Positions 7,901-64,000 of a stretch of DNA of 64,000 bases are shown here, in pieces. The position numbers and the translations under genes were made by a program. The stretch spans positions 103,008 to 167,007 of the forward strand of contig MCFE01000112.1 in NCBI GenBank assembly GCA_002104905.1. Reading direction: 5' to 3'. The stretch is from Basidiobolus meristosporus CBS 931.73. Its lineage: Eukaryota > Fungi > Basidiobolomycota. The notes under the pieces are model-generated. The model made no database searches. It saw nothing but the letters and a program-made list of their open reading frames with translations, and had not been told where the DNA came from. Positions within the stretch are counted from its first letter, which is position 1; the number at the start of each line of letters is the position of its first letter.

Positions 7901-9099
7901 AGAAGATAATCCGTGATGAGGCCAGCAAATTTGTTGTACAGAATGAAACACTCTACCGAATTGTTGATGGAAGCCCTATTGCCTATTGTCCTTATGTTGC
8001 TCGCCTGGATTTAATACATAAGCTACACAATGGATATGGACATCTTGGGATTGAAGGAACCTATAGCCTTGTAAAAGCCAGAGCATGGTGGCCCAGAATG
8101 AAACAAGACATTGAGAAGCTAGTAAAAACATGCCCAAACTGCCAAATCAATCAAGGCCAGCCACAAAGAATTGCCAAACTCTTCCCTTTGGAGCCTGTAA
8201 GACCATTTGAGAGATGGGGAATTGACTTTATTGGAAGACTGCCAACTACCAGGAAATGCAACCGTTGGATCCTAGTAGCAATTGACCATGCCACTAAATG
8301 GCCAGTTGCTAAAGCTGTACCAATAGCCAGTGAACAAGAAGTTGCAAGTTTCATTTACCATGAGATCCTGATGAAGTTTGGATGCCCTGTGGAGATCTTA
8401 TCCGATAGAGGTGCAAACTTTATGGCAAAGACATTAGAGGCTTACCTGGAAATGCAGCAGATCAGACACTTGAAAACCTCGGCATATCACCCCAGAACTA
8501 ATGGAGTCACTGAGCGGTTTAATGGATTATTTGGAAAAATGCTGACCAAGTATGCAAATGGAGTTGTCAGTAGATGGGATGAGTATATAGACCAAGCACT
8601 CTTTGCATGCAGAGTCAGAGTACACAACACCACCCAGCAATCACCATTTTACTTAGTTTATGGATGTGAACCAAGGATTCCAGGAGATCTCACACAACCA
8701 AAGCTTACAGACACCTTAGAAGATGAACTCAGTCAGCCAAGTAGACACCAGCAACTGGAACAAAGACGTCAAGAGGCACAGACCAAAGTATCTCAAAGTG
8801 CAGAAAAGATGAAGCAGAGATTTGATAAGACTATAGCACCAGAAGCATTGACAGTTGGGAACTTTGTATTGCTAAGAAACAACACTCGGAAGAAGTTTGA
8901 GCCACAATGGACAGGACCATTCAAGATCATCAGAGAATGTCCATTTGCAACTTACCAACTGGTGGACAAACAAGGCAATATCCGGGAAGACTTAGTGCAT
9001 AGGGACAGACTCAAGCTTGCAAGACTTGCTGATAATACTGAACCATCAAGATATTGGTATCACAAGAAAAGAGATTCAGGAGAACCCTCTCAACTTTAG
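4966..9099 (+). CDS. Ty3/gypsy Gag-Pol polyprotein, 1377 aa (capsid, CCHC knuckle, protease, RT, RNase H, integrase)
   Basis: [14 protein letters not shown] knuckle; MIDSGAS protease; YLDD RT; [11 protein letters not shown] RNase H; H..H..C..C zinc site and WGIDF/SDRG/TERFNG integrase, in gypsy order. No chromodomain is evident at the C-terminus. Confidence 0.97.
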
Positions 9100-11403: not shown

Positions 11404-14400
11404 TGTTATGATATACTGCTTGAATGTTAAGTTAGATCAGTTTTTAGTTAAATCAATTGGTTTTATGTTTAGCCTATTAGTATATCAGTGTTATCTATCA
11501 AATTAGTAGTATTAGTCAGCAGATGAATCAGCAGATTCTTATTGGACAGAAATAGTTATATTAAGTAGGATCTAATAGGGTGATGATGATGCAATCAAAT
11601 GAGTCATCAGCCACAGCCTACATTAGGAGATACAATTGGTCAGCAACTGATCTGACAAAATGTATGTAAGGAACTGCTGGAACCTCAATAAAAATCAGTT
11701 CAAGTTCTAGTAAATACAATACCAGCTAAACTCCCTATTCCTCTACAAACTCTTATATCAAGAATTGTAACATTGGTAGCAGCAATGACCAGAAACCTCC
11801 CTCCTGAAGAAGGAAGAAACCACCCTCAAGATGTTAGACAAGCAACAATGGAAGAATGCCATGCAGCAAATCCTGGCCCAACTGCAACAGTTACTCCATA
11901 TCCTCAGCCAACAGCAACAAGGAATGACTACCATGGCCCAGAGCCCACAAAGCCCTGTCAAGAGCAACTTTAGTGTGAAGGTCAACTGGTACCATGGCAG
12001 AGTCAATGAAAAACTGGTAGCTTGGCTCTTCCGGATTGAAGAAGCTTTTAAGGCTAAAGGAATTGCTCCAGAAAGTAAGTTGCATTATGCAGCTTTACAG
12101 TGGTACCACATCAAGATCAGGTCGGCCACTATGATGGGATGCTCTACAATCTCTACCTGGGATGAGTTTGTGTTGGAAATTCAGGATGCTTTTGAAGCTC
12201 CTCACCAGCAGACACTACTAAGAAGGAAGTTAAAGACACTCAGACAGAAAGGAATGGTGCAAGAATATATCTATGAGTACAGATGTCTACTTGGACAAAT
12301 TGAAAGAATGGACCTCCTGGATCAAGTTGAATACTTTATTGATGGGTTGAAAGAAAGATCTTATAAGGAAGTGAATTATCAAAGACCTCAGACTATTGAA
12401 GAAGCCATCAAGATTGCCATTGACTATGACTCAGCTATGTTTGGAGTTGGGAAGCCTACAGTGACTAATCAGAAAGGCTACAATTACTATGAAAGAAGAC
12501 AGTCAGAACCAGTACCCATTGAAATAGATGCTGTGCAGAAGAGCCCTACCTCAGAAGAATGCAGAAAGAAAGGACTTTGTTTCAATTACCACCAGCCAGG
12601 ACATATCTCAAAATACTGCCCTCAGAGAAGAAATGGACACCAGTCAATAAGAACCTTCAACCATATTGAGTCCCATGACCACAGTAATGTGGTGGATGAA
12701 CTTGAAGAAGACTTGGAACTCACTTTCCATATGACAGAAGAGTACTTGTCCCAAATGACCTCAAGCTCAGGGAAGCTATTGTACTTAAATGGAGTAATCA
12801 ATGGAGTACCAGCCAAGATCATGACTGACTCATGAGCCTCACAAGAGTACATGTCAGAACAACTTGCCTTGAAAGCTGGAATCAACTCAGAACCTAACAA
12901 ATCAACTTCAGTCTCAACAGCCAATGGGAACTCTCACATAATCAACCGTATTACCCAGCCAGTAAGAATGAAGATCAATGACTATGAAAAAGACTCACAG
13001 GCCTATATATTTGGGAACTGCAAGTTTGACCTTGCACTTGGAAAAACCTGGCTATTTTGTTGCAATCCATCAATCAGCTGTAGAACCCATGCTATTCAGA
13101 TCCAAAAGAACAACAACACTCATGAACTATTACCTGTCAGACTGGATTTCAACTTGGTCAATTCCAATATGTGTGAAACAAGTGAACTTAACAAGACCCA
13201 GATCTGTAGAGCACTTAGAAAAGTTACTCATATGTTCCTCATGGCAGTATTACAGGAGGATTCCTCTACCCCAGCACCCCAGAAGGTCCAGACATCAGTG
13301 CTTTTGTGAAAAAGAAGAATGGAACACTTAGGATGTGCGTTGCCTACAGAGCCCTGAGCTCAGTTACTGTCAAGAATAAGTACCCCATACCTTGGATTGA
13401 TGAGCTTTTGGACCAACTTAATGAAGCCACCATATTCAGCAAGATTGACCTCATGTCAGGATACAACCATATTAGGGTGAAACCAGAAGACATCCCTAAG
13501 ACAGCTTACAGGACCAGATATGGACATTACAAGTACTTAGTCATGAGTTTTGGCCTCACCAATGCCCCAGCAACATTCACAACTCTGATGCAGACTGTCT
13601 TCCAGGAGTACTTAGACAAGTTTGTGATAATCTACCTGGATGACATATTGTTATACAGCAAGACAGAAGGGGATCACTTGGTGCACATTGAAAAGGTCTT
13701 AATGAAGCTAAGAGAAAACAAGCTATATGGCAAGCTAGCCAAGTGTGAATTCTTCAAGGAACACATTAAATATCTGGGACACATAGTGACTAGCACAGGA
13801 GTGACCTTAGACCCTAAGAAGGTTGAAGTTATCAAGAATTTGAACCTGCCCCATAGCATATCAGAACTCAGATCATTCCTTGGAATGGTATCCTATTATT
13901 GGAGATTTGTCAAGTCCTTTGCAAGCATTGCAGCCCCTTGAACTGATATCCTCAAGAAAGACAACACCTACAAGTGGGACATAGCCTGTGAGACTGCCTT
14001 TCAGATGCTCAAGAATGAACTTGCAAAGCTGCCAAGCTTAAGAATACCTGACTTCAGAAAAGAGTTTATCCTGTGCACAGATGCTTTGGATTATGCACTT
14101 GGTAGAGTACTGAGCCAAGAACACAAGGGAAAGAGCTACCCAGTTGCCTTTGAATCCAAAAAACTGAACTCAGCAGAACAAAACTATCTGGTGCATGAGA
14201 AGGAGATGCTTCCAATAATACACTGCCTGAAGACATGGAGATGCAATATTGAAGGAGTCAAATGCACTGTAAAGACTGATCATGCCTCACTCCAGTATAT
14301 ATTTACTTGGAAGGTTCTATTCAGAAGAATGACAAGATGGTGTGAGTACATTCAGCAATTTGACTTGGAGACTGTCTACTGCCCTAGGAAAAGCAACACA

Positions 14401-15896
14401 ATTGCTGATGCCTTATCAAGACTAGAACAAGTGGCACAACTCAACTTGGTGCATGAGTCAGATTGGCCTAGCTTATTACCTCAGTATTTGGAGGACCAAG
14501 CCATTCCTAATGAGGTGGATGAAGAGATCAAGAAGATAATCCGGGAGGAAGCCAGCAAATTTGTAGTACAGGATGAAACACTCTACCAAATTGTTGATGG
14601 AAGCCCTATTGCCTAATGTACTTATGTTGCTTGCCTGGATTTAATACATTAGCTACACAATGGATATGGACATTTTGGGATTGAAGGAACCTATAGCCTT
14701 CTGAAAGCCAGAGCATTGTGGCCCAGAATGAAACAAGATATTGAGAAGCTAGTGAAAACATGCCCAAACTGCCAAATCAATCAAGGCCAGCCACATAGAA
14801 TATCCAAACTCTTCCCTTTGGAGCCTGTAAGACCATTTGGGAGAAGGGGAATTGACTTTATTGGAAGACTGCCAACCACCAGGAAATGCAACCTTTGGAT
14901 CCTAGTAGCAATTGACCATGCTACTAAATGGCCAGTTGCTAAAGCTGCACCAATAGCCAGTGAACTAGAAGTTGCAAGTTTCATTTACCATGAGATCCTG
15001 ATGAAGTTTGGATGCCCTGTGGAGATATTATCTGATAGAGGAGCAAACTTTATGGCAAAAGCATTGGAAGCTTACCAGGAAATGTAGCAGATCAAACACT
15101 TGAAAACCTCAGCATATCACCCCAGAACTAGTGAGTCACTGAACGCTTTAATGGATTATTTGGAAAAATGCTGACCAAGTATGCAAATGGAGCTGTCAGT
15201 AGATGGGATGAGTATATAGATCAAGCACTTTTTGCCTGCAGAGCAAGCATGCACAACACTACCCAACAATTCCCATTTTACTTAGTGTTTGGATGTGAGC
15301 CAAGGATTCCAGGAGATCTCACACAACCCAAGCATACAGACACCTTAGAAGATGAACTCAGTCAGCCCAGTAGTCACCAGCAATTGGAACAAAGACATCA
15401 AGAGGCGCAGGCCAAAGTATCTTGGAGTGCAGAAAAGATGAAGCAGAGATTTGATAAGACCATAGCACCAGAAGCATTGACAGTTGGGAACTTTGTATTA
15501 CTAAGAAACATCACTTGGAAGACATTTGAGCCACAATGGACAGTACCATTCAAGATCATCAGAGAATGTCCATTTGCAACTTACCAACTAGTGGATAAAC
15601 AAGGGAATATCCGGGAAGATTTAGTTCATGGAGACAGACTCAAGCTTGCAAGACTTGCTGACAATACTGAACCACCAAGATATTGGTATCACAAGAAAAG
15701 AGACTCAGGAGAACCCTCTCAACTTTAGTGGGTAGAATGTTATGATCTACCACTTGAATGTTAAGTTAGATCAGTTTTAGTTAAATCAATTAGTTTTATG
15801 TTTAGCCTATCAGTATATCAGTGTTATCTATCAAATCAGTAATATTAGTTAGCAGATGAATCAGCCAATCCTTATCAGACAGAAATACTTGTATTA
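11404..15896 (+). mobile_element. Degenerate copy of the Ty3/gypsy element (pseudogenised gag-pol, truncated 3' LTR)
   Basis: 5' LTR 11404-11772 and PBS; ORF fragments from 11831 to 15728 are collinear with the intact protein, with stops, frameshifts and a ~210-bp deletion at ~13295. The 3' LTR starts at 15738 and is cut at a TA (15895-15896) by a family-A TIR. Confidence 0.95.
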
Positions 15897-18849: not shown

Positions 18850-21800
18850 TAATGCTCATGGAACAAGTCAAGCGCATTCAGCTTGGCCTTGGTTCCTGAT
18901 GGTCCCATGCTATGCTGGCCTTAAGGTGATGGCATGCTAGACTTCTTACAGCCTCTTGAATATTAGCCCACTCTTCATTATTGCACTCAACAGCTTCACA
19001 GATCTTCAATGTCTTTTGATCTTTAGGCTTTGGTATAAACACCACATTGTCACCCTCCCATGCTGTGATAGGTTTTTCTGTGGGCTTTATCTTTGGGCAC
19101 TGTTGTTGTGCTTCAAAGACTGTGCAGTGTTACTCTGCTGTTACATTGGGACATGGCTCAATTCTTGACTGTGACATTGAGCTACTTGAGTTTCTTCTTT
19201 GCAGAAAAGATAATGCTTTCTCTACCTGGGATATTGATTGTTCTACAGGTATTATCTGCTCATCCTGTTTCTGGACTATATCCTGATTTCTCTGGGCCAT
19301 TGCATCTATCCTAGCAGCCACTGCACCTAATTGCTTCATTAATGCTTTGGTATGAACTGACAACATACTTGCTAATATGGGAGTGGTGATGTTATAACAG
19401 CCACTTGCCAGTCTTCAACTGAGGGTACTGCATTTGCTATATTCTCATCTGCCTGAGCATAATGGTCTGCCTGCGGCTCTGCACAGGTTCTCAATTGCCT
19501 ACTGGACTGAGAGCCTGAGGAGTTTGCATTATTACCTTCAGTGGGCACACTGTCAACATGGGCTTTTTTGGTTGTAGCCCTGCTTGTTGCACTGAATGTC
19601 AAAGCAAGCTGTTGTCCAATGGTTCTTCTGCTGCTGTCAGCAGTGAGGTTTGGTTGGGAACCAGACAACTTTGCTTTATTTTTTGGCAGCCTATATATGG
19701 AAGTGAGTCAAACCAAAGGGGAAATAGTGTTACATATATGTGTGTATATGGTGCCACAACTTTATTTATAATGCCCACTATGGTGGGTCATCATTGAATT
19801 TTACATTCATGTAGGTGCAATGTCTCAAATACCAGACTCTCTTAAATTCACATAAGTATCAACCAAAAAGTGATATAATAGCATTATGTTGTTGAAGATC
19901 AAACTGTTTGCCCCATGGACAAGGCTACTTTGATTCAATGCCATAAGCAAAGAGAAAAAAGACCATATGGCTATTGTAGCAAGCACGCAGACAGCATAGG
20001 AAGTAATACTAGGATCACGCCCAGTGTTTTGCCACACATGTCATATTTGACCATTCATCAGTCACTACTGTACCAACATTATCTTGCCGGTGTGGTAGGG
20101 TAAACATACCTCCCACAGACAAGTTTATTCATATAGTCATTATGATATACTTATCCATATTTTATCTTATCAGTATTATCCCATTCTTCTTTTGCCAATA
20201 TTATCAGTATTATCCCCATATGACGTTTACCCTGATTAGTTATTAGCATTAGTTATCCCAGATGTTATTCAGCTTTGTGATCAGTAGATGTATCTATATA
20301 AGGCAAGCACCCGTGTCAGTACCCAAGACACATGACCTAGGTCTGTGTTACCATCCCTACCATTTCAATACCATATATGGTATTTCTATGTTGCACAGGT
20401 TTCAGACTACTGATTGCTGATTGGTTGAATGTGCTGTGCCTTTTAGAACCTTCCAGGACATTCTTGGCATATTTTTAGCTCATAGTGATGTCATCAAGAG
20501 TTCCACTGATACCTAGAATCTTCTAGAACCTTGTCATTAGTAATCACTTGGCAATCAGGAAAAGTACTTAAGGGAAAGCAATCCCTCATCAATAAATCAT
20601 CCCTTCTACCAGTAACACTTCTACCTTATTGATTAGCAGTTGATCACTGCACCTGCCTTCAACAGTACATCTCAGACCTGCCATCAAGGAGCTTTTCAGG
20701 GTAGTGCACAAGACACACAGAGGCCTTTGGAGACACTTGGAGCACCTAGGAAGCTAGAGAGGCAGGAGCTTTTACCATAGTGACATATTGACAAAGACAC
20801 CAGCAGTTTAGACACAGAGGTTATTGCACCCATCAGACACCTCACACACCTTGAGTTGTGTAGCTTCTCCCAGGAGTACCTCTACACCATCACACCGGCC
20901 AGCTGATGCTTCTGTATTAGCACCTGGCTGTCTTTGTCACCTTGCACAAACTGAGTCAGGCAAGTTTGTGACGCCTTTAGGCTCACCTCAGCCTTCTGAA
21001 TATGGCTTGCAGTGTGATAGCTTTGACAAACAAGACTCACTGATGGATTGTGAGCCTATCTCCCCTAGCAACAGTACCCCGCATGAGCCCAGTCAAATCC
21101 TGGAATGCAATGAGACAACACCCATTGAAACAAATGCCATGGATACTATATGGTGCCAAGTGAGCCCAGTAATCCATCTACTGGTGAATGATGTAAAGTT
21201 GTGGCTAGAGAAGTGGCACATTTCCACCAATATTAGTAATGGAGGCCTTGAGGATTTACTATTACTTCTTGCCAAAATGATTCTGGGATGCAACTTACCA
21301 TGTACATGGTACAAGTGGACTACCGTCATGTGGCTGGCAACATATGACCCAGAGATCATCCTGATACCAGCATGTGTTAACAGTTGCATGGCATTCACAT
21401 CCAAAAATGCTACAATTGCAACGTGTCCAAATTGTCAGGAATCCACCACCATTGAGGGAAAACATTGCTCACACTCTGGATATATTCCAGTAATACCCTG
21501 TCTAAAGAAGCTCATGCAGTCCAACAAATATTGCAAAGCTATAAAGTACCGCACTCAGTATCAATCAAGCGCAAACATATCCAATATATTCAATGGCAAA
21601 CATGACAAACAGCTAAGAAGCAAGGGCTACTTTGAAGGTATGTATGACCATGCCTTTGTCTTAGCACTTAATGGATTCTCATTAAACAAGTACTCTACCA
21701 GCAAATCCTGCTGGCCACTGATTCTCATCAACCTAGATCTACCACCTATCTTATGGTATCAGTGCAAAAATTTGATGGTAGTCTCACTGGTGTCTGGGCC

Positions 21801-22006
21801 TAAATTACCATCCAACCTGGATAGCTACCTGTATCCATTGCTAGATGAATTTTGTATGCTTTCCAGCAGGATAACAGTAAATGGCCATCATGTCAAAGTG
21901 CATATTATTATCTGCATTGGAGATACCCCAGCCATCAGCAAGATAGCCAGCTTTTCTGGGCACAATGGACAGTATTGCTGTCAAATGTGTGAGATCCAGG
22001 GGATTA

Positions 22007-22215
22007 GACCTGTTCCATTGTGCCATTGATCATAGTGCCAGAAAGTGCTGTATATTTTGTTATTAATTTGATATTTCAGGGTCATATGCATGTCAATTTT
22101 GGTCTCAAATTGGCACTGTATGGCACTATCTGGCACTCTGTGGCATGATCAGGCTCTGTCTGGCATGCTATGGCACTATTGGGCACTATGATCAGCTGGA
22201 ATGATGGAACAGGTC
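22007..22215. mobile_element. 209-bp family-A MITE
   Basis: GACCTGTTCC...GGAACAGGTC flanked by TA on both sides. Removing it plus one TA restores the transposase frame (EIQGI-IYSTTLTHYYYP...HLLFNN). Confidence 0.9.
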
Positions 22216-47756: not shown

Positions 47757-48647
47757 TTACGAACAATGATCAAATTCTAACTCAAGTTGAAGTGTACGAG
47801 AGACTTGGCAGTACTCAAAAGTCGTTACCGCCTCAAACTGTTCATACCAGTTGTCATATTTGGCACTCTTCACCTGCATCAGTAGCTTGATAAAATCAAC
47901 CAATCTCAGGCCCTGAGTACTAGAGTGGGTGCATGCTCTGGCGGTGAAGAATGATGGCAGCCGAAATATACGCTCTAGCATACAATCATGGCCACCAACA
48001 CTTAAGTTGAAAACTGTTGAGCTATCCAGACTCAATCCGGTCACTAAAGACAGCTCTTGTACCCGACAGCGGCTGTCACAGTTGAACCCATTGCGATTTA
48101 TAGCAGATGCATTCCGAATAATCCCCTCCGGGTATAGCCACGTGTATTGATGGCCAACGTTTCCTTCCATCAAGTGCCGAATGTCCACAAACAGCTGGCA
48201 CCGCGTGGCTGGAGCATGCTTATATAAGGCCCAGCTTTCACACCACTCCTGCTTGAACTGGCTGGCGGCAAATGAGGTAGCTACAGGGGTGCAGTGGAAA
48301 AAAAGCAACCGGTTAAGATGCTTGAGAAAATGAGCATCTTGCAAGTTCCGCGTAGGGCCATAGTTGCTGCATCTGCAAATCAGGTCTCTGGCTGGGCGTT
48401 CTAGGTGGCAGCTCTCATATACATGGCAAACGGATTTGGCACAAGCATACAGAGTGTTGATCAAAGCACTGAGCACCCTGGTATTTAATGGTAGCCGGTA
48501 TAGCCATGGTAGTGCCACCTGCCGCCAGTGGTGAGAAACACAGCTTAGATTCAGCAGGGCCTGATGTTCACCTTGTGCTGCCAAATCTTTGCACAGAATT
48601 GGGCCAATGGTGACTGCAAAAATATTGTTATTGTGAATGTTCATCAT
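47757..48647 (-). CDS. F-box-like hypothetical protein, 296 aa
   Basis: Intact ORF; N-terminal ILCKDL...ALLNLSCVSHHWRQVALPWLY resembles an F-box C-terminal half. A degenerate paralogue lies at 58500-59560. Confidence 0.6.
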   Translation of the reverse strand: MMNIHNNNIFAVTIGPILCKDLAAQGEHQALLNLSCVSHHWRQVALPWLYRLPLNTRVLSALINTLYACAKSVCHVYESCHLERPARDLICRCSNYGPTRNLQDAHFLKHLNRLLFFHCTPVATSFAASQFKQEWCESWALYKHAPATRCQLFVDIRHLMEGNVGHQYTWLYPEGIIRNASAINRNGFNCDSRCRVQELSLVTGLSLDSSTVFNLSVGGHDCMLERIFRLPSFFTARACTHSSTQGLRLVDFIKLLMQVKSAKYDNWYEQFEAVTTFEYCQVSRTLQLELEFDHCS

Positions 48648-49633
48648 TAGTTAAGAGGTGTTGGTAAAGCGATACGAACACAACGCCACTCATATATACG
48701 ATCTTGGTAATACAAGGTTGACATCATCACAATTGAACAAAGATTGACAGGTGCTCAATAATGCCTGTTGTATTTACTGCTTCGATTCTTGATTTCCTTG
48801 CCTACAGCAACTTCCACACCCTCAAGGCAGCAAAGGTAAGCTCAGGGGTACTTTAGATGTAATGAAGAGTGCGCAGGAGAGGATGTCTTAGTACTGAAGA
48901 AGTGGAGACACTCATAGTAGCAAGAGCCAAGATACATAGATACCCATTGGTTAGATTGAGTGTGTGTGAACAAGTAAACAGAAAGTAAGTCTAAGGTGCA
49001 TTGGGGGCTTACTGGATTAGATCCGCCAACACCAATTATCCAAACAATGAGCCGGGATATGTATTGTTGTAACAGCAATCCGCCAAAGGTCACATCTTGA
49101 TCGTGTATAAATAGCCGATCAACAGCCTCAACTAGCTACTTCACTGACAGCAACAACTAGCTGCTGTCAATTGACGCACTCTTGTGGGAAGGGTCAATCG
49201 GCTTATATATGTTTGACGGCATGCTATTCCTACTGTAGGTGTGACTTCGTGGTAGACTAATGGATCATTGATATCGTTATTGAATGCCGGTTGGCCAAAG
49301 GCTGATTGTTTTGCTTTCAGCACTCTAATGATGAGAGACAGATACATGTGTCTGTTCCCACTAGAACCTCTTATTTCTGGTTCTTCGTTTGATCGGAACT
49401 CATAGAGCGTGTGATCAATAGCCGGGGCTTGGTCATCATTATTAGACGCAGGTACAAGGCAGGATATCAATGCAAAAGGCTCTTCATGCTGTTAATATTA
49501 TGAAGCAGAATCAAAGTTTTTAGAATGCACATGATTGCGTGCTTGCAAACTGCCTGTATACCGCAAAGAACCAAGATGCATCCCATTCTAGCCCTCTTTG
49601 TCACCACAGGTATTCAAGCAAATATCCCCGATT

Positions 49634-49957
49634 ATTCTCGTTCCGCAAGGAGGAAGATGCACAGAATATTTGCCACTACATTGATGGTCTTCTCGTCCAA
49701 ATGTCAAGGTACACCTCTAATCAGACTCTCTCAGGCAAGCAAGATACTAACGCAGGAGTTGAGTAAGAGGCGGTCCTGTATTGAGCAATCCTGAAGCAGA
49801 TTCCGAGCTGTGGGGTAGATGCGGTGGCTATGGATGGTTGAGGGGCAGATACTGGGGACGAGGACGTTATGGTCGCTATGGTCGTTACGGGGGGCGTTGG
49901 GGATATGGACACTACGGAGTATACGGAGGCTATAGTGGATGCGACTGGGGTTACTGA
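49634..49957 (+). pseudogene. Gly/Tyr/Arg-rich prepropeptide, copy A (type II), 5'-degenerate
   Basis: KEEDAQNICHYIDG pro-region; stop at 49764-49766; core LWGRCGGYGWLRGRYWGRGRYGRYGRYGGRWGYGHYGVYGGYSGCDWGY*. Confidence 0.8.
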
Positions 49958-50303
49958 TTTACCACGTTATGCCGCTGAATAAGCCCCATTTTTTTCATCG
50001 ATGTCTTCACACCTCGCTTGATAATAGGATTCATGTGACACAACACGAGGTCTGTGCACACAGGCAAGCTCCGTATATCAGCCATCAACAAGTCATCTGA
50101 GTTCTAGCAGCGCCTTGGAGAATAATCACCTACCGTATTCATATTAACCATTCTGCTATGCAACAAAACTATACAATTTTTGCCATTATAAGTCTTGGCT
50201 CTTCCATCAAATCTATTCACACAGCTGATGCAACTCTTTTCGAGCAAATATAAGCACTGCCATAGGTAATAAGGTCACTCAAAAGGCATCCAAATCTTTA
50301 GGT

Positions 50304-50470
50304 GTGATAACAATGTACTGCGACTTTCGTACAGCTGTCAAGGAAGAAGAAAACAACAAGCTATGGGGGTATAATGGGCCCTGGAAGGGCAGACACTGGG
50401 GGCAGGGAGGATATGACGATCTTCGGGGACTGAGAGAGTCTGATTTTGAAGGTGAATATTGGCCATCTTT
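50304..50470 (+). pseudogene. Gly-rich prepropeptide remnant, copy B (type III)
   Basis: KEEENNKLWGYNGPWKGRHWGQGGY; no signal peptide; paralogue at 55100-55255. Confidence 0.5.
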
Positions 50471-50748
50471 GCTCGTTCGATCATGGCAACTTGTGTTGGT
50501 AAGATGCAATATATGTTAGTGAGGAAGGCAGGGCACAGCTATGTGGAAGCGATTGAGGCTTGAGTTGATGGTAGCAATCAATATATTTTCACAGGCAAAT
50601 AGTTTCCCATTTATCAATAGGGGAGCCATCATTATAGTGACGGTTAAGGAGGAGTAAATAATCCAGATATCTAACTCCATTATCGGCTTCTGCTGTATGT
50701 GTATATATAGTCAAGGCAAGGAGCTATGTGTAGCATTAGGTAACCATC

Positions 50749-51137
50749 ATGTACAAGCCTCTCGAAATTGTCTGCGCGCTCTTAATGGCCGAATATTCTG
50801 TTGCGATTCCTGTTCAGCCAATAGATAGCAATGTAGCAAGTGCCATCAAAGCGCCAAGATGGTAACAAAGTCCCAGTCCACCAAGGATGAAGACGCTCGT
50901 TTCATTCTCGATGATATATTCGGCTAAATGTCGTTCGATACAAAAAATCAAGCAGCATCCACTAATAAGGACATTGACTCTGAAGAGGCTGAGTTGTGGA
51001 GAAGATATGGCGGGCGATACGGTGGCTATGGGAGCGGAAGGGGCAGATACTGGGGACGAGGACGCTATGGTGGCTACGGGAGATGTTGGGGATACGGTCG
51101 CTACGGTGGGTATGGAGGGTGTGGCTGGGGTTGCTAG
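50749..51137 (+). pseudogene. Gly/Tyr/Arg-rich prepropeptide, copy C (type I)
   Basis: MYKPLEIVCALLMAEYSVAIP signal; frameshifting deletion at ~50850 and TAA (CAA in copy E); core WRRYGGRYGGYGSGRGRYWGRGRYGGYGRCWGYGRYGGYGGCGWGC*. Confidence 0.85.
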
Positions 51138-51786
51138 CTTAACGCATTGTCATGCTAAATAAACACATTCGCAATCAATCACATAATATTGCGCAATTCA
51201 TCTTCGTTAGTACCCGGTGGCCAAGGATGTCAACACACCAATATTTTGATATATGTGCTCCATAGGTGTACTCGGTCGAATGAGGCTAAGCTTCCAGTAG
51301 CACCGCACATATTCCCTCAAGGTGCTTTGTAACAGTGGAAAGCAGACAGGCTACTAGTGTTTGAATCTGGTGAGTTATGGTTGTGGCGGAGTGAGCTGGG
51401 GTATCTTCACCGCAGTGAGTATGGATGCTACTGAGGGTCCCACGGCTGCCGCCTGAGCTGCTTGTTTACCATGTCAAGCCTATGCACACTTCGTTGTTGT
51501 AATTAATACACTAAGCTATCCTGTTAAGATCTTGCATGCGCAGGTATTAGGATGGTTATACATATGGGTGCTACGATGGAGGCTGATAAAGAGTGGTTCT
51601 GTCGAAATTTACCCGATCTTACTGTGCATACACTCTGAATGCTGATCATGTGACTAGAGATCATCCATCCATTGAGTATACCAAACGTACTATTCCAAAA
51701 TACTCTATCAAACTTAATCGTTGGTGAAATTGATTTTCGTATATATAGGCAATTGGCGAGCTTTATTTGAGCATCCAACGTTCCCA

Positions 51787-52212
51787 ATGCATAATCAACT
51801 CACTGTAGTCTGCGCTCTGCTCATGGCCGCCAGTGCCTTTGGAAATCCTGCCCAGGTGGCAAGTGCAAATGTTGCAAGTTCATCCATCTCCGGTAGAGAC
51901 TCACAAAGTGGATAACTGGTGAAAAAGTTCTCGTCTAGCAAGGGAGAAGATGCGCAGAACATTCGCCACTACATTGATGGACTTCTTGGCCAAATGTCAA
52001 GGAACATTTTTGATACGACTCTTTCAGATAAGCAAGATGCCAACCAAGGAGTCGAGAAACAGGACAGCAGTCCTGAACTGAACAACCCTGAAGCAGATTC
52101 CGAAGAGTCCGAGCTGTGGGGCAGATATGGTGGCAATGGACGGTGGAGGGGCAGATGCTGGAGATGCGGACGCTACGGACGCTATGGCGGCTACGGAGGG
52201 CGTTGGGGATAA
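51787..52212 (+). pseudogene. Gly/Tyr/Arg-rich prepropeptide, copy D (type II)
   Basis: MHNQLTVVCALLMAASAFGNP signal; TAA at 51913-51915 (CAR in paralogues); DSEESELW junction; core truncated at GGRWG*. Confidence 0.85.
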
Positions 52213-52350
52213 ATAAGCATAAGTTAACTTCATTGATGTTCAATGCCATCATGTGCTCTAACAACGTAACTGGTCTGCGAACATTAATCTTTCATTGATT
52301 GGGCCTGGCAGTGTATTTAAAATTGTTGCGAGTGAGTTTGATTTGCTCTT

Positions 52351-52488
52351 TTTACCACATTAAGCCTTACAAGTGTTTGTGTGCATACACCCTAAATGCC
52401 GCTCATTTACCACGTTAAGCCTTACAAGTGTTTGTGTGCATACACCCTAAATGCCGCTCATTTACCACGTTAAGCCTTACAAATGTTT
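52351..52488. repeat. Tandem repeat, ~2.5 x 55 bp
   Basis: TTTACCAC(A/G)TTAAGCCTTACAAGTGTTTGTGTGCATACACCCTAAATGCCGCTCA; a single diverged copy lies at ~55518. Confidence 0.9.
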
Positions 52489-53010
52489 ATGCGTAATAAA
52501 GTATACAAAGCACAATTGGATGGTAAATATTGGCTATTTTGTACTGTTTAAATTGACTTGCGCTTTTGCTCCATCATAAATCGTTTTTGATCGATACAAA
52601 AGCCAGGTAACTTGTGTTTGAATGCATTTGTGGCGTAGCATCAACACAGATCTACTGATGGTTCACTCCTAATAAGGATGGGATCGAAGAAGGCTAAATT
52701 ATGCGACTATGTGGAGTCAGGACGTTGAGGCTACTAGGCATGAACAAACTATTTTTATCTATGAATGCTGAACTTGATTAAATGCATTTTTTGAGTTGAT
52801 GATAGCAATCAATATTCAATATACGCAAGTGATCTACCAGTAGCAAGGCGATTACTTTTCCATTGATCAATAATCACAAAGGAGGAGTAAGCAATCCCAA
52901 CGTCGGTTCAAAGAAGCCATAGACGTCTTTATCAAGCTTCATCATCGGCTTCTGCTGTACAGCTACATGTAGTCAAGACGAGAAGCTATGTGCAACATAC
53001 AGCAATCACA

Positions 53011-53460
53011 ATGTACAAGCATCTCTCAATCGTCGGCGCCTTCTTAATGGCCTCATATGCTGTTGCAATTCCTGTACAGCCAACAGACACCAATGTAGCA
53101 AGTGCCACCATCTCCATGAGAGATCCTCAAAGCGGCAAAACGGTCACAAAGTTCCAGTCCACCAAGGATGAAGACGCTCGTACCATTCTCGATGACATAT
53201 TCGGCCAAATATCGGGCGATGGGCTTGCCAATAAACAAGCAGCTTCCACTGATGAAGACTTCGACTCTGAAGAGGCTGAGCTGTGGGGACGATATGGCGG
53301 GAGATATGGTAGCTATGGGAGGGGAAGGAGCGGATACTAGGGACGAGGACGCTACGGTCGCTATGGTGGCTACGGGGGACGTTGGGGATACGGTCGCTAC
53401 GGTGGATTTGGAGCCTACGGAGGCTATGGAGGGTATGGCGGGTGTGACTGGGGTTGCTAG
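53011..53460 (+). pseudogene. Gly/Tyr/Arg-rich prepropeptide, copy E (type I), single in-frame TAG
   Basis: MYKHLSIVGAFLMASYAVAIP signal; DSEEAELW junction; TAG at 53338-53340 where paralogues have TGG; otherwise open to ...GGYGGCDWGC*. Confidence 0.88.
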
Positions 53461-54185
53461 CTTAACACTTCATCATGCTAAATAAACACATTTGCTATCA
53501 ATCAATAATATTGCGAAATTCATCGTCGTTAATACCTAGTGACCAAGGATGTCAACACGCAAATACTTTGATATGTATGTGCTCCATAGGTGTACTCGGT
53601 CGAATTAGGCCAAGTTACCAGTAGCACCGCACATATTCACTCGAGGGGCTTTGTAATAGTGGAACGCAGGCAGGCTACTAGTGTTTGAATTTGGTGAGTT
53701 ATGGTTGTGGCGGAGTGAGCTGGGGTATCTTCACCGCAGTGAGTACGGATGCTACTGAGGGTCTCACGGCTTCCGTCCGAGTTGCTTGTTTACCATGTCA
53801 AGCCTTACAACTACACCAGACGGCCGCATAGCTGCAACCCTTCACTATACTACCATAGCTCTTGATTGATGAAAATCATGCCCACTTCGTTGTTGCAATA
53901 ATTAATACACTAAGCTATCCTGTTAGGATTTTGCATGCGCAGATATTACGATGGTTATACGTATGAGCGCTATGATGGAGGCTGATAAAGAGTGGTTCCT
54001 CCGAAATTTACCCGATGTTACTGTGCATACACTCTGAATGCTGATCATGTGACTAGAAATCATCGATCCGTTAAGTATACCAAGCGTACTACTCCAAAAT
54101 ACTCTATCGAGCTTCATCTTTGGTGAAATTGATTTTTGTATATATAGACAATTGGCGGGCTTTATTTGAGCATCCAACGTTCACA

Positions 54186-54662
54186 ATGCATAATCAACGC
54201 ACTGTAGTCTGCGCTCTGCTCATGGCTGCCAGTGCCTTTGGAAATCCTGCCTAGGTGACAAGTACAAATGTTGCAAGTTCATCGATCTCCGGTAGGGACC
54301 CACAAAGTGGACAGGTGGTGAAAAAGTTCTCATCCAGCAAGGAAGAAGATGCGCAGAATACTCGCCACTACATTGATGGACTTCTTGGCCAAATGTCAAG
54401 GAATACGTTCGATCGTACTCTCACAAGTAAGCAAGATACTAACCAAGGAGTTAATCAAGAGGAGAGCAGTCCTGAATTGGACAACCCTGAAGCAGATTCC
54501 CAAGAGTCCGAGCTATGGGGTAGATATGGTGGCTATGGACGGTGGAGTGGTAGATACAGGGGACGAGGACGTTACGGTCGATATGGTGGCTACGGAGGAC
54601 GTTGGGGATATGGACGCTACGGGGGCTATGGAAACCATGGTGGATGTGACTGGGGCTGCTAA
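54186..54662 (+). pseudogene. Gly/Tyr/Arg-rich prepropeptide, copy F (type II), single in-frame TAG
   Basis: MHNQRTVVCALLMAASAFGNPA then TAG at 54252-54254 (CAG in D and G); otherwise open through DSQESELW and the 48-aa core ending CDWGC*. Confidence 0.88.
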
Positions 54663-55099
54663 TCTGTCGCATTAGAATGCTAAATAAACACCATTTAACT
54701 TCATTGATGTGCAATGCTTTCATGTGCTCTAGCAGCACGACACGAGGTCTGTGCGCTTGCAATGCATGCTTTGTACTTCAGCTTAGTCACATTAGTACTC
54801 TACGGAAGCTATATCATTAGGCCAATGATAGCACTAATTTAGTTCAGTTCGTAAAGCTTGAGCTGATTAACAAGTCATCTGAGTTCTAGCCACCTTTTTC
54901 AGCATCGCCTCGGAGAATAATGACCTACCGTATACATATTATTGAATCCGCTCATCGTACAAGGCTAACCATAAAACAAAGCTATACAATTTTCACCATT
55001 ATAAGTCTTGACACTTCCATCTATTCACACAGCTGATGCAATTCTTTTCAGGCAAGTATAAGCACTGCTATAGATAATAAGTTACTCAAAAGGCATCCG

Positions 55100-55255
55100 A
55101 ATCTTTAGCTGTCAAGGAAGAAGAAAACAATCTAGAGGAGGCTAAGCTATGGACGTTGGAAGGGCAGACACTGGGGACAGTGAGGATATGGTGATCTTTG
55201 GGTATACGGTTATAGAGGTTACGAAGGCTATGGCGGGTGAGTTGATACGTCATTA
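55100..55255 (+). pseudogene. Gly-rich prepropeptide remnant, copy B' (type III)
   Basis: KEEENNLEEAKLW...GRHWG..GYG..YGYRGYEGYGG, frameshifted; paralogue of 50304-50470. Confidence 0.5.
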
Positions 55256-55707
55256 TGCTGAGCAACTCCTTACATCTGCACATTCTCTGACAACTTTGTT
55301 GTAAAATCTTAGTTAGTAACCTTCATTCAAATAATGCGCTGATCACGTACTTAGTTGGGGCTCGGTAAATATACAGCCGCCATGGCTAGTAAGCTGAAAG
55401 CAGTGTATGTTGTGTACTCTATCAACATAACTGGTCTGGGTACTTTAATCGGTAGGACCTGGCAGCGTATTTGAAATTGGATCATTATAGCTTTTGCGGA
55501 GTGAGTTTGATCTGCTCATTTACCACGTTAAGCCTAACTAATATACTAGAATGTAACGGATTTTGTGCGCATACACTCTAAATGCAGTAGCCATCAATCC
55601 ATAATGTATACAAAACATAACATTCCAATCAAACTCCATCTTTGGTGCAAGGGGTTTTTGTATAGATAGACAATTAGCTCGCTTTATTTGAGCCTCCAAC
55701 ATTCACA

Positions 55708-56109
55708 ATGCAGAATCAACTCACTGTAGTCTGCGCTCTGCTCATGGCTGTCAGTGCCTTTGGAAACCCTACACAGGTGACAAGTACCATCCATCCACAA
55801 AGTGGACAAGCGGTAAAGAAGCTCCCATCCTGCCAGGAAGAAAACGCACAGAAGATTCGCCACTACATTGAAGGAATACGCTTGATCAGACTCGCTCAGG
55901 CAATCTTCAAGGAAGAGGGGAGCAACCCTGATCTGAGTAGTCCTGAAGAAGATTCTGAAGAGTCCTAGCTGTGGGGTAGATACAGTGGCTTTGGAAGAGG
56001 GAGTGGTAGATACTGGGGACGAGGACGTTATGGTCGCTATGGTGGTTATGGAGAGCGTTGGGGATGTGGACACTACGGTGGCTACGGTGGATGCGACTGG
56101 GGTTGCTGA
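55708..56109 (+). pseudogene. Gly/Tyr/Arg-rich prepropeptide, copy G (type II), single in-frame TAG
   Basis: MQNQLTVVCALLMAVSAFGNP signal; TAG at 55966-55968 (GAG in paralogues); core LWGRYSGFGRGSGRYWGRGRYGRYGGYGERWGCGHYGGYGGCDWGC*. Confidence 0.88.
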
Positions 56110-56251
56110 TTTTTCACAAACATCATTCTACCGCATCTCTGCTATAACGTGCTTATAATTGACCGAGACTCAGGCGATCTAAGTTAAGTTCAATCGTACC
56201 GGATCTATCATACCTGGCACTCATGGCTAGTGTTGTTGTATGTTACAATAG

Positions 56252-56254
<3 letters not shown>

Positions 56255-56286
<32 letters not shown>
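56255..56286. repeat. (TA)16 microsatellite
   Basis: Direct reading; it lies near the switch to CpG-poor sequence. Confidence 0.95.
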
Positions 56287-56290
<4 letters not shown>

Positions 56291-58499
56291 ACGGAGCACA
56301 TTTAATCAGACTCTCTCAAGCATCGATCTTCAACGCATACATAAGACCCAAGATATGGTGATTGAGAGTCTATAAAGTAGAGAAATCAAGTATTTTATAA
56401 TACCTGCCCACAGTTGTTGAGTCCCATGTTGAGAGAGGATTTGTAGACAGAGTCACCCGTAAGTGCTGTACACCGGCATCAGGGCTTCTGTGGATATGGA
56501 AAACAAAGACCTCTTTGGCTTAATAACTTGTGAGCACATATTTCATCGCCTTGGCAAGGTCCAGCAGGCACATGCAGCAGGAGTTAATACAACCATGACC
56601 ATTGGTATGGTGGATCTCCCTTGATGCCTGTCATGTTTTCCTACATTATTGACTGCTGTATATGATACCTACAGCATATTTTGCTTCGAAGTCTCTATAC
56701 CATTGTAGTTGAAACTTCTGCTTTATTCACACTTCCATAGAAATGGATAGCATACTGTAAAATGGCTTCTTTGCATCTTCAGTTGATGTCATATTGACAG
56801 GATTTTTAGCAGTTGATGTGTATATCAATTGACTTCCTGGTATGGGATTTTCAATTTTGGCTTTCCTTAGGACTGAACATATACAATAAAAGGTATAATG
56901 AACCAATTTAGGCCTCTGCCAGCTCCTCTTGTATACGCTTTGGGTGAAGCAATATTACCTCTTTTTGGTGATGTGTACCTGAGAGCTTATTAAGCTGGCT
57001 AATGAACAATGGCTGCAACAGCTTAATTCTTATTCTTCTGACAAATTCCAGTCTTCCTGAGCCTTGACATGACTTGCTTTGTTATTGATGATGGACTAAA
57101 TGCATATCTCTTCCAGCAAGTATGTTCTCCACCAGCTGCAACATTTACTCTTATGTATAGATCATTTGACACTGTGGGTATTGTGGCACATGTTAATAAT
57201 GAAGTTGCCAATTATTTGTAAAAGATTAAAACTGATTGGAAAATTCTACTGGAGTACTGTCTCACAACAGCATCATTAGTATCATTGAAGGCACAAATAT
57301 ATATCCTTATCTAGTGCCTGTAGTTTGATGGTGTAAACTTGCCTAAATTCTAATATTGGGCCTTATGCCATAACTCAAACTATATATATTCCAAAGTACA
57401 TATATTCATTAATAACTACTATAGCAGGATCATACATCCGCCAATAATCTTACTAAAAGCTTTGCCTTTTACTTTGATTAAATGTGAACCTCTCTTGCAA
57501 CAAGGCATTTTGTATACACAGCAACTCTGTGGATATATCACTTCAAGATGTTGTAGTTGCTAGGGCTACATTTGACTGAGTCATACCACTTAGCACTCTT
57601 ATAAACCTGATGTCAAGCTATGAAATGATTGCACACCACTAATAGAGTACAATAATAGCTGATCAACAATCTTAAAAGATTCTAGGAAGTTGCAAATTCC
57701 CCCAGGCCTTTTCAAAATCCTAAACTTTGTTCAAAGCTTTATGGTACTACCCTTTGATACCAAAGTAATTAATTTCAGTAAGCTCCTCTCAGGTCCAAGA
57801 ACTTCATTTGGTATCAATCAAGCAACAAGTAATATCATGCAATTAAAACGGATGTCTAGATTATTGTATCCAAGAGAAAAGTGTAATAAAAACTCTTAAA
57901 TGGTCTTATTGAACCAAAGGGATAGTTAGGTGCCAAATTGTAGAATTGTCAAGGAATGGTGGAAATATTAGCAGAAAGGTTCTGGTCTAATATTGATCTT
58001 CAATACAGCTGAGCTTGGCTATAAAGACAAAGGGGTGGATATGTTATGGAGGCTAGGCTTGGTGTTCTTGGGAGCAGGTATGTATGTATGTAAAGATGAT
58101 TAAGCAGGAAGCAATGGTATTTTTTGATTTGAATTCTGTGTGGAATACCCATGGTAATAATGGGTAATACAATAAAGCAGAATGATTTTTAGTGAAATGT
58201 ATGAGCAGTACCAGGGAGGGTAAAAAAGTAGCAATACCATAACAGCAGACTGTAGTTGATTGCTTACGCACCGTCAGGTTACCATAATAAGACCAGCCAG
58301 GAGCTGTACAAACACCATCAAAACACTGTCAAGTTTATTATCATATATGGCAAAAAAAATATTTATCAAAAATTGGTTGGCCTTCTGTCAGAATCCTACC
58401 AAGTTATCATTAAGATTCTGTGGAATGACAAGGTGCAGGTATTGATACAGCATTACAACAGGATCCTGACAATTTGATCTAGTTTGGATCTACCTGCAA

Positions 58500-61298: not shown

Positions 61299-63612
61299 GT
61301 GTGGAAGGTGAAGATGAAGATGCTTCTACAAGAAAGAGGCCTTTGGGATATTGTCATGGGAGAAGAATGCCCTCCTAAAAGCGTGGGAGAGGAAACCTTA
61401 AAGTACCAGAAGAAAGAACAAAGTGCCTTTAACTGCATTTGCCTTAATGTCAAGGACAAATTGCTAATTCAATGCTCAAGAGCAAAAACGGCAAAGAATG
61501 CCTGGAAGGCATTAGAAGACACCTACCAGTCATGTTCAACTGCTAAGAAAATGTATCTGAGAAGAAAATTCTTTACTACAAAGATGCTGCCAGGAGAAGA
61601 TATGAAAAACCTAATTAACAGAATTACCCTGCTGGTAGATGAGATGGAATCTGTGGGCATACCAACTACTGAGGAGGATGTGATAGTTACCATCCTGAAT
61701 AGCCTGACAGACAAGTTTCAGGGCCTTGTATCAGCCCTAGAGTCCAGAACTGAAGATTTGACCTTAAATTACATATATGGAAGGCTCCTGGATGGAGAAT
61801 TAAGAAAATCAAGCGCCAAATAGAAGGAAGAAGAAAATGCTTTAATAAGCAATGATAACCAACAAAAGAGGTACCTAAGACTCTACAAAGGCAACAACAA
61901 CCTATTTTGCAACTACTGCAAAAGGAAAGGACACACATCAGACCGGTGTCTCAAAAAGAGATATTATAAGCAAAAGAAGACTGAATATGGAAATGCTGCA
62001 ACAACTGAAGATAGACTGTTCATATCTGTACTAAGTATGACCACAAACAAGGATTCTCAGACGTGGTATATTGACTCTGGAGCTTCTCAACACTTTACAC
62101 ACCAAAAAGAACTTTTAACCCAATATCAAGAAATTCTAATTATGAAGATTTTCATGGGTGACAATAGAACACTTGATGCAGTGGGAGAAGGAACTATCCA
62201 AGTAAACCTTAGAAGCAGTAAAGGAAGCCATACACTGACCTTTGAAGAAGTACTCTATGTACCAGAAGTAGCCAAGAACCTACTCTCTGTAAGCAAGGCC
62301 ACAGCAGAAGGACTCAGTTTCAGTTTTGACAATTCTGGATGCAGGATCACTGATCAAAATGGTGCCCATATTGCTTTGGGCATCAGAGATCAGAATCTAT
62401 ACAAGTTGACTTATATTCCATCATATTTGGAAGCCAATTTAAGTAACTTAAATGAAGAAACACCAATGCTTTGGCACAGGAGATTTGGACACATCAATCT
62501 TGATTATTTGCGTAAAATGATCAAAGATCAGCTGATATCTGGAGTGAAAATTGATCCCCCAGCTAATTTGGAGCACTGTGAAGCCTGCATATATGGGAAA
62601 CAAGCCAGACAACCGTTCAAGAGCTCTGGGTTAATCAAAATTAAGAAAAAATTAGATCTAATTCACTCAGATCTGTGTGGACCTATGCAAAATTTATCCT
62701 TAGGCGGGATGAAGTATTTAATCCCTTTTATTGATGATTATACAAGATACACATGGGTCTACTTCATGGAGAGAAAGGAAGAAGCTCTGTCTAAGTTTGG
62801 GGAGTTTAAAGCCACGGTGGAGAGAGAAATTGGTGAAAAAATCAAGAAAATACGATCTGACAATGGTGGAGAATATACCTCAAAACTCTTTGTCCACTTC
62901 TGCAAAATTCATGGGATAAAGCAAGCAACTACTGTACCATACTCCCCACAGCAAAATGGAGTAGCAGAACAAGCTAACAGATCAATAATTGATATGGCAA
63001 GATCTATGATCCATGATCAAAAAATTATCCTATGATTTTTGGGCGGAATCAGTTGCAACTGCTGTATATCTTAAAAACAGGAGTTATAACAGAATACTTT
63101 GTGATTCTACTCCATTTGAAGCATGGTATGGATACAGACCAAGTGCAGAACATCTAAGAATATTTGGGTGTACAGCATATGCCAAAAAACTGGCTGGAAA
63201 TCAGTCAAAATTTGAGCCAAAAAGTGTAAAATGCATATTTTTGGGCTACTGCAATGAGAGTAAGGCATACAGACTCTACAATACCAAAGCAAAGAAGCTG
63301 ATCAAGTCCAGGGATGTGTTGTTTGAAGAAAATTCAAAATTTTCACAAAAAATGACATCAGATGATGACAAAAATTTGATCTCAAGTCCACCAATTGTCA
63401 GGATTGAATCAGAGCAAAACAATCCAAATTTTTTCACTCCAGAGGACTCTACAACTGTGGTTCAGCCAGAATCAGCGCCCAGGAATATCCCAGAAGTGAT
63501 CATTCCAGTACCAAATGCCCAGAGATCCAATCAGACAAGAAATAGCCCAAATTACTATATCAATGTGGGTACAAACTTAGCCTATGCCTATTCAGTCCAT
63601 ATTGAGGGTTAG
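61299..63612 (+). pseudogene. Copia gag-protease-integrase, disrupted
   Basis: WKVKMKMLLQERGLWDIV gag; in-frame TAG at 61821-61823; CNYCKRKGHTSDRC knuckle; WYIDSGASQH protease; LIHSDLCGPM, IRSDNGGEY and QQNGVAE integrase; +1 A frameshift at ~63020. Confidence 0.92.
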
Positions 63613-63779
63613 GGGGGAGGAAAGTCACCAAGTGGTGAAATCTTTATTTACTTATGACAAGTATCTAAAGAAGCCATGTTAATCTGAAGTTAGGGGGGGA
63701 GACAGTCACCAACAGGTGAAATCTTTATTTCAGTTGAAACAAAGAAGCCAGCGCTACTGTTGTAGCTTTGATATAAGGG
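63606..63779 (+). repeat. Telomere-associated repeat, two ~82-bp units
   Basis: Each unit begins GTTAGGGGGG and contains AGTCACC-N4-GGTGAAATCTTTATTT and AAAGAAGCCA. Confidence 0.8.
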
Positions 63780-64000
63780 TTAGGGTTAGGGTTAGGGTTA
63801 GGGTTAGGGTTAGGGTTAGGGTTAGGGTTAGGGTTAGGGTTAGGGTTAGGGTTAGGGTTAGGGTTAGGGTTAGGGTTAGGGTTAGGGTTAGGGTTAGGGT
63901 TAGGGTTAGGGTTAGGGTTAGGGTTAGGGTTAGGGTTAGGGTTAGGGTTAGGGTTAGGGTTAGGGTTAGGGTTAGGGTTAGGGTTAGGGTTAGGGTTAGG
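63780..64000 (+). repeat. Telomere (TTAGGG)n
   Basis: About 36 perfect TTAGGG units to the end of the window; the G-rich strand runs 5'->3' towards the end. Confidence 0.99.

Follow-up and report, generated by a model that had tools for sequence, protein, structure and literature searches.

A subtelomeric, probably decayed gene array from a Basidiobolus-specific family with an acidic region and a Gly/Arg/Tyr-rich tail

Introduction

Defensins and cathelicidins are animal host-defence peptides that combine an anionic propiece with a cationic peptide, and Mfp-3 and the cement proteins of the sandcastle worm are adhesives rich in Gly, Tyr and basic residues. For early-diverging fungi, gene-encoded antimicrobial or adhesive polypeptides are, to our knowledge, poorly known. 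Here we analyse a tandem gene array from Basidiobolus meristosporus CBS 931.73; the genus Basidiobolus lives as a symbiont in the gut of amphibians and reptiles and occasionally causes disease in mammals. The array occupies 49.6-56.1 kb of a stretch of 64,000 nucleotides (nt) of contig MCFE01000112.1 (assembly GCA_002104905.1, positions 103,008 to 167,007 of the forward strand), referred to at its full length as the window, and its copies code for a signal-like N-terminus, an acidic region and a tail made up mostly of Gly, Arg, Tyr and Trp.

By composition, the closest known peptides are the YGGYG peptides of the NLP-29 cluster and the caenacins (CNC) of nematodes, which are Gly/aromatic-rich antimicrobial peptides with YGGYG or YGGWG motifs (PMC6780910, PMC11112505); for one of them, NLP-31, antifungal and antibacterial activity has been reported (PMC6780910, PMC11112505). 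The Basidiobolus proteins are likewise basic, rich in Gly and aromatic residues, presumably secreted, built with repeats of YGGYG-type motifs and encoded in tandem gene clusters. However, a profile search with the Basidiobolus family shows no homology between the two groups, listing no nematode protein at E <= 0.001, and the Basidiobolus tail is far richer in Arg. We also know of no nematode NLP or CNC precursor with a long acidic region, an EEAELWGRY junction or a CDWGC end.

Among fungal secreted precursors, the Kex2-processed repeat proteins (KEPs) have been surveyed, and B. meristosporus was the richest strain with 43 KEPs (PMC7329392, PMC6339444). The products of the Basidiobolus family would be fungal secreted precursors as well; KEPs, however, consist of repeated cores between Kex2 sites, whereas the former have one tail and no dibasic site at their junction, and the family thus falls outside the KEP definition. 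Neither ORX73481, ORX84462 and ORX78405 (members of the family) nor ORX90058 and ORX65005 (members of the sister families described below), nor any ORX6-9 string, occurs in the supplementary files of that survey, which are possibly incomplete.

Results

Three-frame translation of the array gave six recognisable paralogues (copies A, B, C, D, F and H) and two short relics, all on the plus strand (Table 1). In the layout of the window copies, a signal-like N-terminus precedes an acidic region, which leads through a DSEE(A/S)ELWGRY junction into a tail that consists to ~90% of Gly, Arg, Tyr and Trp and has a C(D/G)WGC end. A repeat search recovered the tail-coding segment (~108 nt) in six copies with a spacing of 1.1-1.46 kb and an identity of 62-86%. 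Two subfamilies, with N-terminal starts of the form M(H/Q)NQ.TVVCALLMA in copies C, F and H and MYKxL...AIPVQP in copies B and D, alternate along the array and give rise to a super-repeat of 2.3-2.4 kb. Each of the six copies is disabled, be it through an in-frame stop, through a frameshift or because it is truncated.

Table 1. Copies of the array, their lesions, and two features beyond the array
Feature	Position	Strand	Description	Lesions
Copy A	49606..49957	+	subfamily-1-like, 5'-truncated	lacks signal and first ~38 codons; 4-bp deletion near 49770; internal stops; terminal Cys replaced by Tyr
Relic A'	50211..50519	+	short copy (EEENNKLWGYNG...), 74% identity to relic G'	heavily decayed
Copy B	50749..51137	+	subfamily-2-like; tail end CGWGC	19-bp deletion at 50846 (frameshift); in-frame stop at 50925-50927
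Copy C	51787..52212	+	subfamily-1-like	TAA at 51913 (Gln in paralogues); 72-bp deletion at 52210 removing the last 17 tail codons including CDWGC, the stop codon and a few bases beyond; 4 replacements within the otherwise frozen tail
Copy D	53011..53460	+	subfamily-2-like	TAG at 53338 (Trp in paralogues), sole lesion
Copy F	54186..54662	+	subfamily-1-like	TAG at 54252 (codon 23, Gln in paralogues), just past the signal, sole lesion
Relic G'	55019..55283	+	short copy, related to relic A'	decayed
Copy H	55708..56109	+	subfamily-1-like	TAG at the very junction (55966, Glu in paralogues); three deletions (22, 9 and 8 bp) within 55871-55913 with a locally compensated frameshift, ~14 acidic-region codons scrambled
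Copia-type gag/integrase fragments	61299..63612	+	between array and telomere, transposon-rich context	
Telomere repeat (TTAGGG)n	63777..64000	+	end of window	

A preliminary description of this sequence had spoken of about eight co-oriented paralogues with one architecture in a subtelomeric position, with an acidic pro-region followed by a cationic core. These observations are confirmed: the six copies and two relics share their orientation, net charges range from -4 to -10 in the acidic region and from +5 to +9 in the tail, and G, R, Y and W account for 42 of the 48 tail residues in copy F, exactly as quoted. The window ends in telomere repeats which begin 7.7 kb past the last copy, so that its 3' end is a chromosome end. 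The interpretation given at the time is partly supported. An array and a gene family exist, as had been stated; at this locus, however, every copy is broken, and the array is not a working battery of precursors.

Intact homologues, in contrast, are found elsewhere in the genome, where the preliminary description had supposed that they should be looked for, and since they exist the idea of a real family is not undermined from this side. Using the open reading frame (ORF) of 135 amino acids (aa) at 54255-54662, i.e. the remainder of the copy F gene, as a query, we found 12 proteins, all of them 'hypothetical proteins' of B. meristosporus CBS 931.73; copy F matches one of these, P0001, with an E-value of 1e-54 and 71% identity at 100% coverage. 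In clusters at 90% identity, P0001 (149 aa) represents 28 members and P0002 (139 aa) 11 members, and tblastn with both proteins matches all six window copies. The latter thus share homology with the family in acidic region, junction and tail alike, but none has an uninterrupted ORF from signal to CDWGC. Tandem arrays in plus orientation, with both subfamilies interleaved in the manner of the window copies, lie on at least six contigs of GCA_002104905.1 (L001-L006), and at least 18 intact intronless coding sequences of constant length (139-149 codons) were obtained from these six, next to frameshifted ones. As none of the six contigs contains telomere repeats, a subtelomeric placement is established for the window array only.

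The intact genes allowed us to ask how the sequence of the tail has been maintained, using Nei-Gojobori estimates of synonymous (dS) and non-synonymous (dN) divergence on a codon alignment. Between intact members of subfamilies 1 and 2 the acidic region is saturated (proportions of synonymous and non-synonymous differences pS 0.77 and pN 0.33), whereas the tail shows a dS of 0.56 and a dN of 0.033 (dN/dS 0.06), with ~14 synonymous and 4 non-synonymous changes (P = 3e-6 against neutrality). For window copy D compared with intact subfamily 2, the tail differs by 22 synonymous and 3 non-synonymous changes (P = 4e-11). Because synonymous sites have diverged while the amino acids have not, the near-identity of the tails of both subfamilies reflects purifying selection, which has held the amino-acid sequence of the tail; past selection on this core had already been suspected in the preliminary description. 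Gene conversion alone was rejected as the source of the tail identity, since synonymous tail sites are 39-62% different between subfamilies and lineages.

The same figures bear on a rival reading without any gene family, namely a tandem DNA repeat of low complexity and high GC content whose translation gives Gly, Arg and Tyr by chance. The tail is indeed of low complexity and several GenBank models use another frame, but the strong synonymous excess is confined to one frame, and at least 18 intact ORFs have constant length. Moreover, a profile search of 1.84 billion representative proteins gave 14 matches at E <= 0.001, nine of which are Gly/Arg/Tyr-tail proteins of B. meristosporus and thus belong to the family proper. 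Another match, P0042 of Basidiobolus ranarum, shares homology with the family in its signal and acidic region (E 3e-13 at 33% identity), so the signal-like N-terminus and the helix motif have been kept as far as this species. A mere DNA repeat is therefore effectively refuted by dN/dS, and we regard it as practically negligible.

Several variants of the gene were seen among the family members. The GenBank models P0003, P0007, P0009, P0010 and P0011 use a different frame for the tail (…GADTGDEDVTVATVVMEV…) and represent either copies with a frameshift or erroneous gene calls. One subfamily-2 gene (L004, 3148-3567) contains a tail segment of the subfamily-1 type, GRRRGRY, and hence some exchange between subfamilies has taken place within the tail. 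Several arrays also contain a third type, a chimera without a signal, whose N-terminal part ahead of junction and tail is an unrelated segment rich in Cys (LDRFNRCDKCFDQPCH...) (L003 11884-12150 and 17662-17934, L004 7791-8087; also P0012 and P0040).

With regard to the age of the window array, copies C, F and H form the sister group of intact subfamily 1 in the tree and copy D that of intact subfamily 2; the two-subfamily unit therefore predates the split of the window array from the others. Over the whole gene, window copies and intact relatives differ with a dS of 0.8-1.2 at a dN/dS of 0.12-0.22. By contrast, neutrality is not rejected for the terminal branches, neither for F (4 synonymous, 10 non-synonymous changes plus 1 stop, i.e. 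11 in the test; P = 0.44) nor for C (7 synonymous, 13 non-synonymous; P = 0.14). The window copies have thus been separate for a long time (dS about 0.9) and lost their constraint only recently; the array was constrained through most of its history, and all of its copies have since been disabled. This pattern agrees with a loss of constraint that was recent and affected the whole array, at a chromosome end with many transposons: the window contains an intact Ty3/gypsy polyprotein (1377 aa), a decayed second gypsy element, a Tnp2-like transposase ORF and the Copia fragments of Table 1 (4966-9099, 11831-15728, 20824-22029 and 61299-63612). Hypermutation resembling repeat-induced point mutation was considered as a cause of the decay and rejected, as the changes on the F and C branches, although few, show no bias for C-to-T or G-to-A and one of the stops is a G-to-T change.

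From these data the window locus is very probably a pseudogenised array of a real, selected family. It might be objected that some of the copies are functional and that their stops are assembly errors, are read through, or yield useful truncated products. Copies D and F each have a single point lesion and highly conserved tails; D could still give a product with signal, acidic region and a stub of 19 aa, and H one with the acidic region only, ending at the same junction as P0042 of B. ranarum. However, each of the six copies has been hit independently, at a different position and in a different way (four substitution stops, two frameshifting deletions, the 72-bp C-terminal deletion and the 5' truncation), the terminal branches evolve neutrally and the array has transposon-rich surroundings. 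A reassigned stop codon does not account for the stops because the replaced residues differ (Gln, Gln, Trp and Glu), and the long transposon ORFs in the window follow the standard code. Introns concealing the stops were likewise dismissed, the intact paralogues being intronless and colinear over the stop positions. Hence we consider functional copies in the window improbable.

In the intact members, the acidic region comprises 70-90 residues with a net charge of -7 to -10 (isoelectric point (pI) 4.0-4.4) and is followed by the junction (P/S)EEA(E/Q)LWGRYGG and a tail of 49 residues with a net charge of +7 to +9 (pI 9.9-10.2), ~90% Gly, Arg, Tyr and Trp and the CDWGC end. YGGYG occurs three to four times per intact tail. 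The signal peptide was judged by its n-h-c pattern together with an AlphaFold helix at residues 3-15, and we infer that the protein is secreted. AlphaFold with the family alignment gave a confidence (predicted local distance difference test, pLDDT) of 47 and predicts no helices other than that of the signal and one in the acidic region (residues 52-80), the remainder, including the tail, being disordered.

Besides the family itself and P0042, the profile search matched two further B. meristosporus proteins, P0043 and P0044, which represent sister families in tandem arrays of their own (hidden Markov model (HMM) E-values of 1e-6 to 1e-4, i.e. weak). These arrays comprise at least eight copies on L008 (2200-16000) and at least four on L009 (40-5800), several of them frameshifted. 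The sister families resemble the Gly/Arg/Tyr-tail family in their occurrence in the same organism and in their tandem, plus-oriented arrays; they have a similar signal and 'A(S/I)ASVS' motif, are acidic over a stretch of the protein and share the PEEAELWGR junction without change. They are only weakly related to it in sequence and differ from it in that their acidic region has a greater length and the tail consists of (WGRGR)n, i.e. Arg, Trp and Gly, without Tyr or the terminal Cys pair; one branch (L008) in addition has a His/Lys-rich block (HHKKHHKK...). For the remaining matches of the profile search (uncultured-source protein, Synchytrium protein, DEAD-box helicase) the similarity looks compositional. 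The B. ranarum gene lies at 3185-3532 of JASJQH010008265.1 (L007), with a Sulfotransfer_3 gene (265-1679) as its neighbour on the opposite strand.

The family is undescribed in the literature searched, and GenBank lists its members as hypothetical proteins, in accordance with the earlier view of an uncharacterised fungal family. A literature search found no paper on it or its motifs, the PDB sequence search gave no significant match, and NCBIfam gave none at E <= 10 for P0001, P0002, P0020, P0024 and P0005. In Pfam nothing exceeded the threshold: GRP (PF07172), the family of plant glycine-rich proteins, scored 8.1-12.6 bits (E 0.22-5.8) against a gathering cut-off of 30. In plant glycine-rich proteins, too, a signal peptide precedes a Gly-rich region that contains Tyr, but with scores below the cut-off the Basidiobolus family is not a member. 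Two of the members bear the UniRef label 'RSAM-associated Gly-rich repeat protein', which would point to a bacterial origin or to a precursor of a ribosomally synthesised and post-translationally modified peptide; this was rejected, given the lack of an NCBIfam match and of a radical S-adenosylmethionine enzyme gene in the arrays. An oomycete 'glycine-rich protein' cluster from a feature search of the ESM Atlas (0.83) remained below the meaningful level.

In the surroundings of the array, an ORF of 296 aa adjoins it on the minus strand (47757-48647), with a weak F-box-like match only (E 0.009) and no called gene on record, and a (TA)n microsatellite lies just 3' of copy H (~56240-56300). Directly beneath the telomere repeat (63600-63777) there are two direct repeats of ~80 nt, each containing a G-run (GTTAGGGGGGAG), a 5-bp hairpin (TCACCAnnnnGGTGA) and AATCTTTATT; these may be tails of telomere-associated retroelements.

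Discussion

Taken together, the locus is probably an old, now decayed subtelomeric array of a gene family specific to Basidiobolus. What the intact members do has to be judged from their design. Their anionic region balances the cationic C-terminal part, as in the precursors of the defensin and cathelicidin type, which also have a signal, an acidic segment that approximately cancels the C-terminal charge (-7 to -10 vs +7 to +9 in the Basidiobolus family) and an organisation as multigene families. There is, however, no relation to them in sequence or fold: the Basidiobolus tail is disordered and of low complexity rather than a disulfide-rich fold, and a recognisable convertase site is missing.

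On this basis, the acidic half could neutralise the cationic tail in cis during export. The junction would be the point at which the two halves are separated or unmasked, since it is conserved even in the sister families with Arg/Trp tails. The tail, once freed or exposed, would then act as a secreted polycation, most likely on competing microbes of the gut or of dung. The Arg/Trp repeats and the His/Lys block of these sister families have a composition typical of cationic antimicrobial peptides. An antimicrobial role is favoured because the tails of the sister families resemble such peptides and because Basidiobolus lives among the dense bacteria of gut and dung; as a specific mechanism, it can be put forward tentatively, at somewhat less than even chances. 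The abundance of Basidiobolus correlates with the structure of the gut bacterial community, which the fungus seems to affect (PMC10964425).

Several points weigh against this picture. At the junction there is no dibasic site of the Kex2 type; subfamily 2 has none anywhere, and subfamily 1 has as its only dibasic motifs RRR within the tail and KK in the acidic region. For this reason 'prepropeptide' is a term for what is inferred about the product and not for what is observed. In B. ranarum, P0042 stops at the junction and no tail is found in the downstream DNA; therefore the front half may have a function of its own. The stops and deletions of the window copies are read from the assembled sequence alone. 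Finally, the high copy number and the almost invariant product suit an abundant structural or adhesive material equally.

Such a material, e.g. for the sticky tip of the capilloconidia or for spore walls, would rely on cation-pi interactions with cross-linking through Tyr and Cys, or on coacervation of the tail with its own acidic half, and the window would still contain a decayed array. Dozens of near-identical copies with an invariant tail indicate a demand for dosage and not for diversity, the tail (~90% Gly/Arg/Tyr/Trp with two terminal Cys) belongs to a disordered protein, the junction is free of a processing site, and Basidiobolus capilloconidia bear adhesive tips which stick to insects (PMC10964425, PMC13370150). 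The arrays examined, on the other hand, contain no modifying enzyme, be it a tyrosinase, a peroxidase or another cross-linking gene, and the (WGRGR)n tails and the His/Lys block of the sister families are more antimicrobial-like than glue-like. The parallel with Mfp-3 drawn in the preliminary description stands as far as composition is concerned and fails for homology. Like Mfp-3 and the sandcastle-worm cement proteins, the Basidiobolus proteins are small and disordered, apparently secreted, composed largely of Gly, Tyr and basic residues (Arg or Lys), present in many variants and suggestive of cation-pi or coacervation chemistry; unlike them, they have a fused acidic half, which is without counterpart there, and no modifying enzyme near their genes, and no sequence relation to Mfp-3 or other known adhesive proteins is found. 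We see an adhesive or structural product as the main rival of an antimicrobial one, and as rather unlikely.

A signalling or host-directed peptide, i.e. a neuropeptide-like YGGYG mimic of nematode peptides or an effector on insects or on the gut of amphibians and reptiles, was considered as well. The tail contains several YGGYG motifs, YGGYG-containing NLP peptides of nematodes have their action at neuronal receptors (PMC11112505), and dung and gut habitats are common to Basidiobolus and invertebrates (PMC10964425). But this proposal is built on composition; the profile search shows no homology to the nematode NLP and CNC peptides, and there are no cleavage sites that would release short YGGYG peptides. 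We regard it as highly improbable.

Returning to charge masking, one may go further and combine the GRY-tail and WGRGR-tail families into one lineage-specific Basidiobolus superfamily of tandemly encoded, ribosomal, charge-masked polycations rich in Arg, aromatic residues and Gly, which would be unmasked at EEAELWGR by a protease other than Kex2 and serve as the main weapon against gut bacteria and/or as capilloconidial glue. In this full form the proposal is doubtful. If it were true, it would add to the fungi a charge-masked polycation design that is undescribed in them, and the subtelomeric arrays would be a record of its birth-and-death turnover.

As it stands, the window array is a clear case of subtelomeric birth-and-death: an old array of two subfamilies, the members of which were disabled recently and independently, and thus the graveyard of the family and not its factory. 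The design of the family resembles that of charge-masked cationic precursors and of Gly/Tyr-rich antimicrobial peptides without being homologous to either, and its tail is short enough to be synthesised and assayed. The interaction of Basidiobolus with bacteria has so far been ascribed to horizontally acquired secondary metabolism; the family may represent a second, ribosomal arm of this interaction, or the long-sought spore glue.

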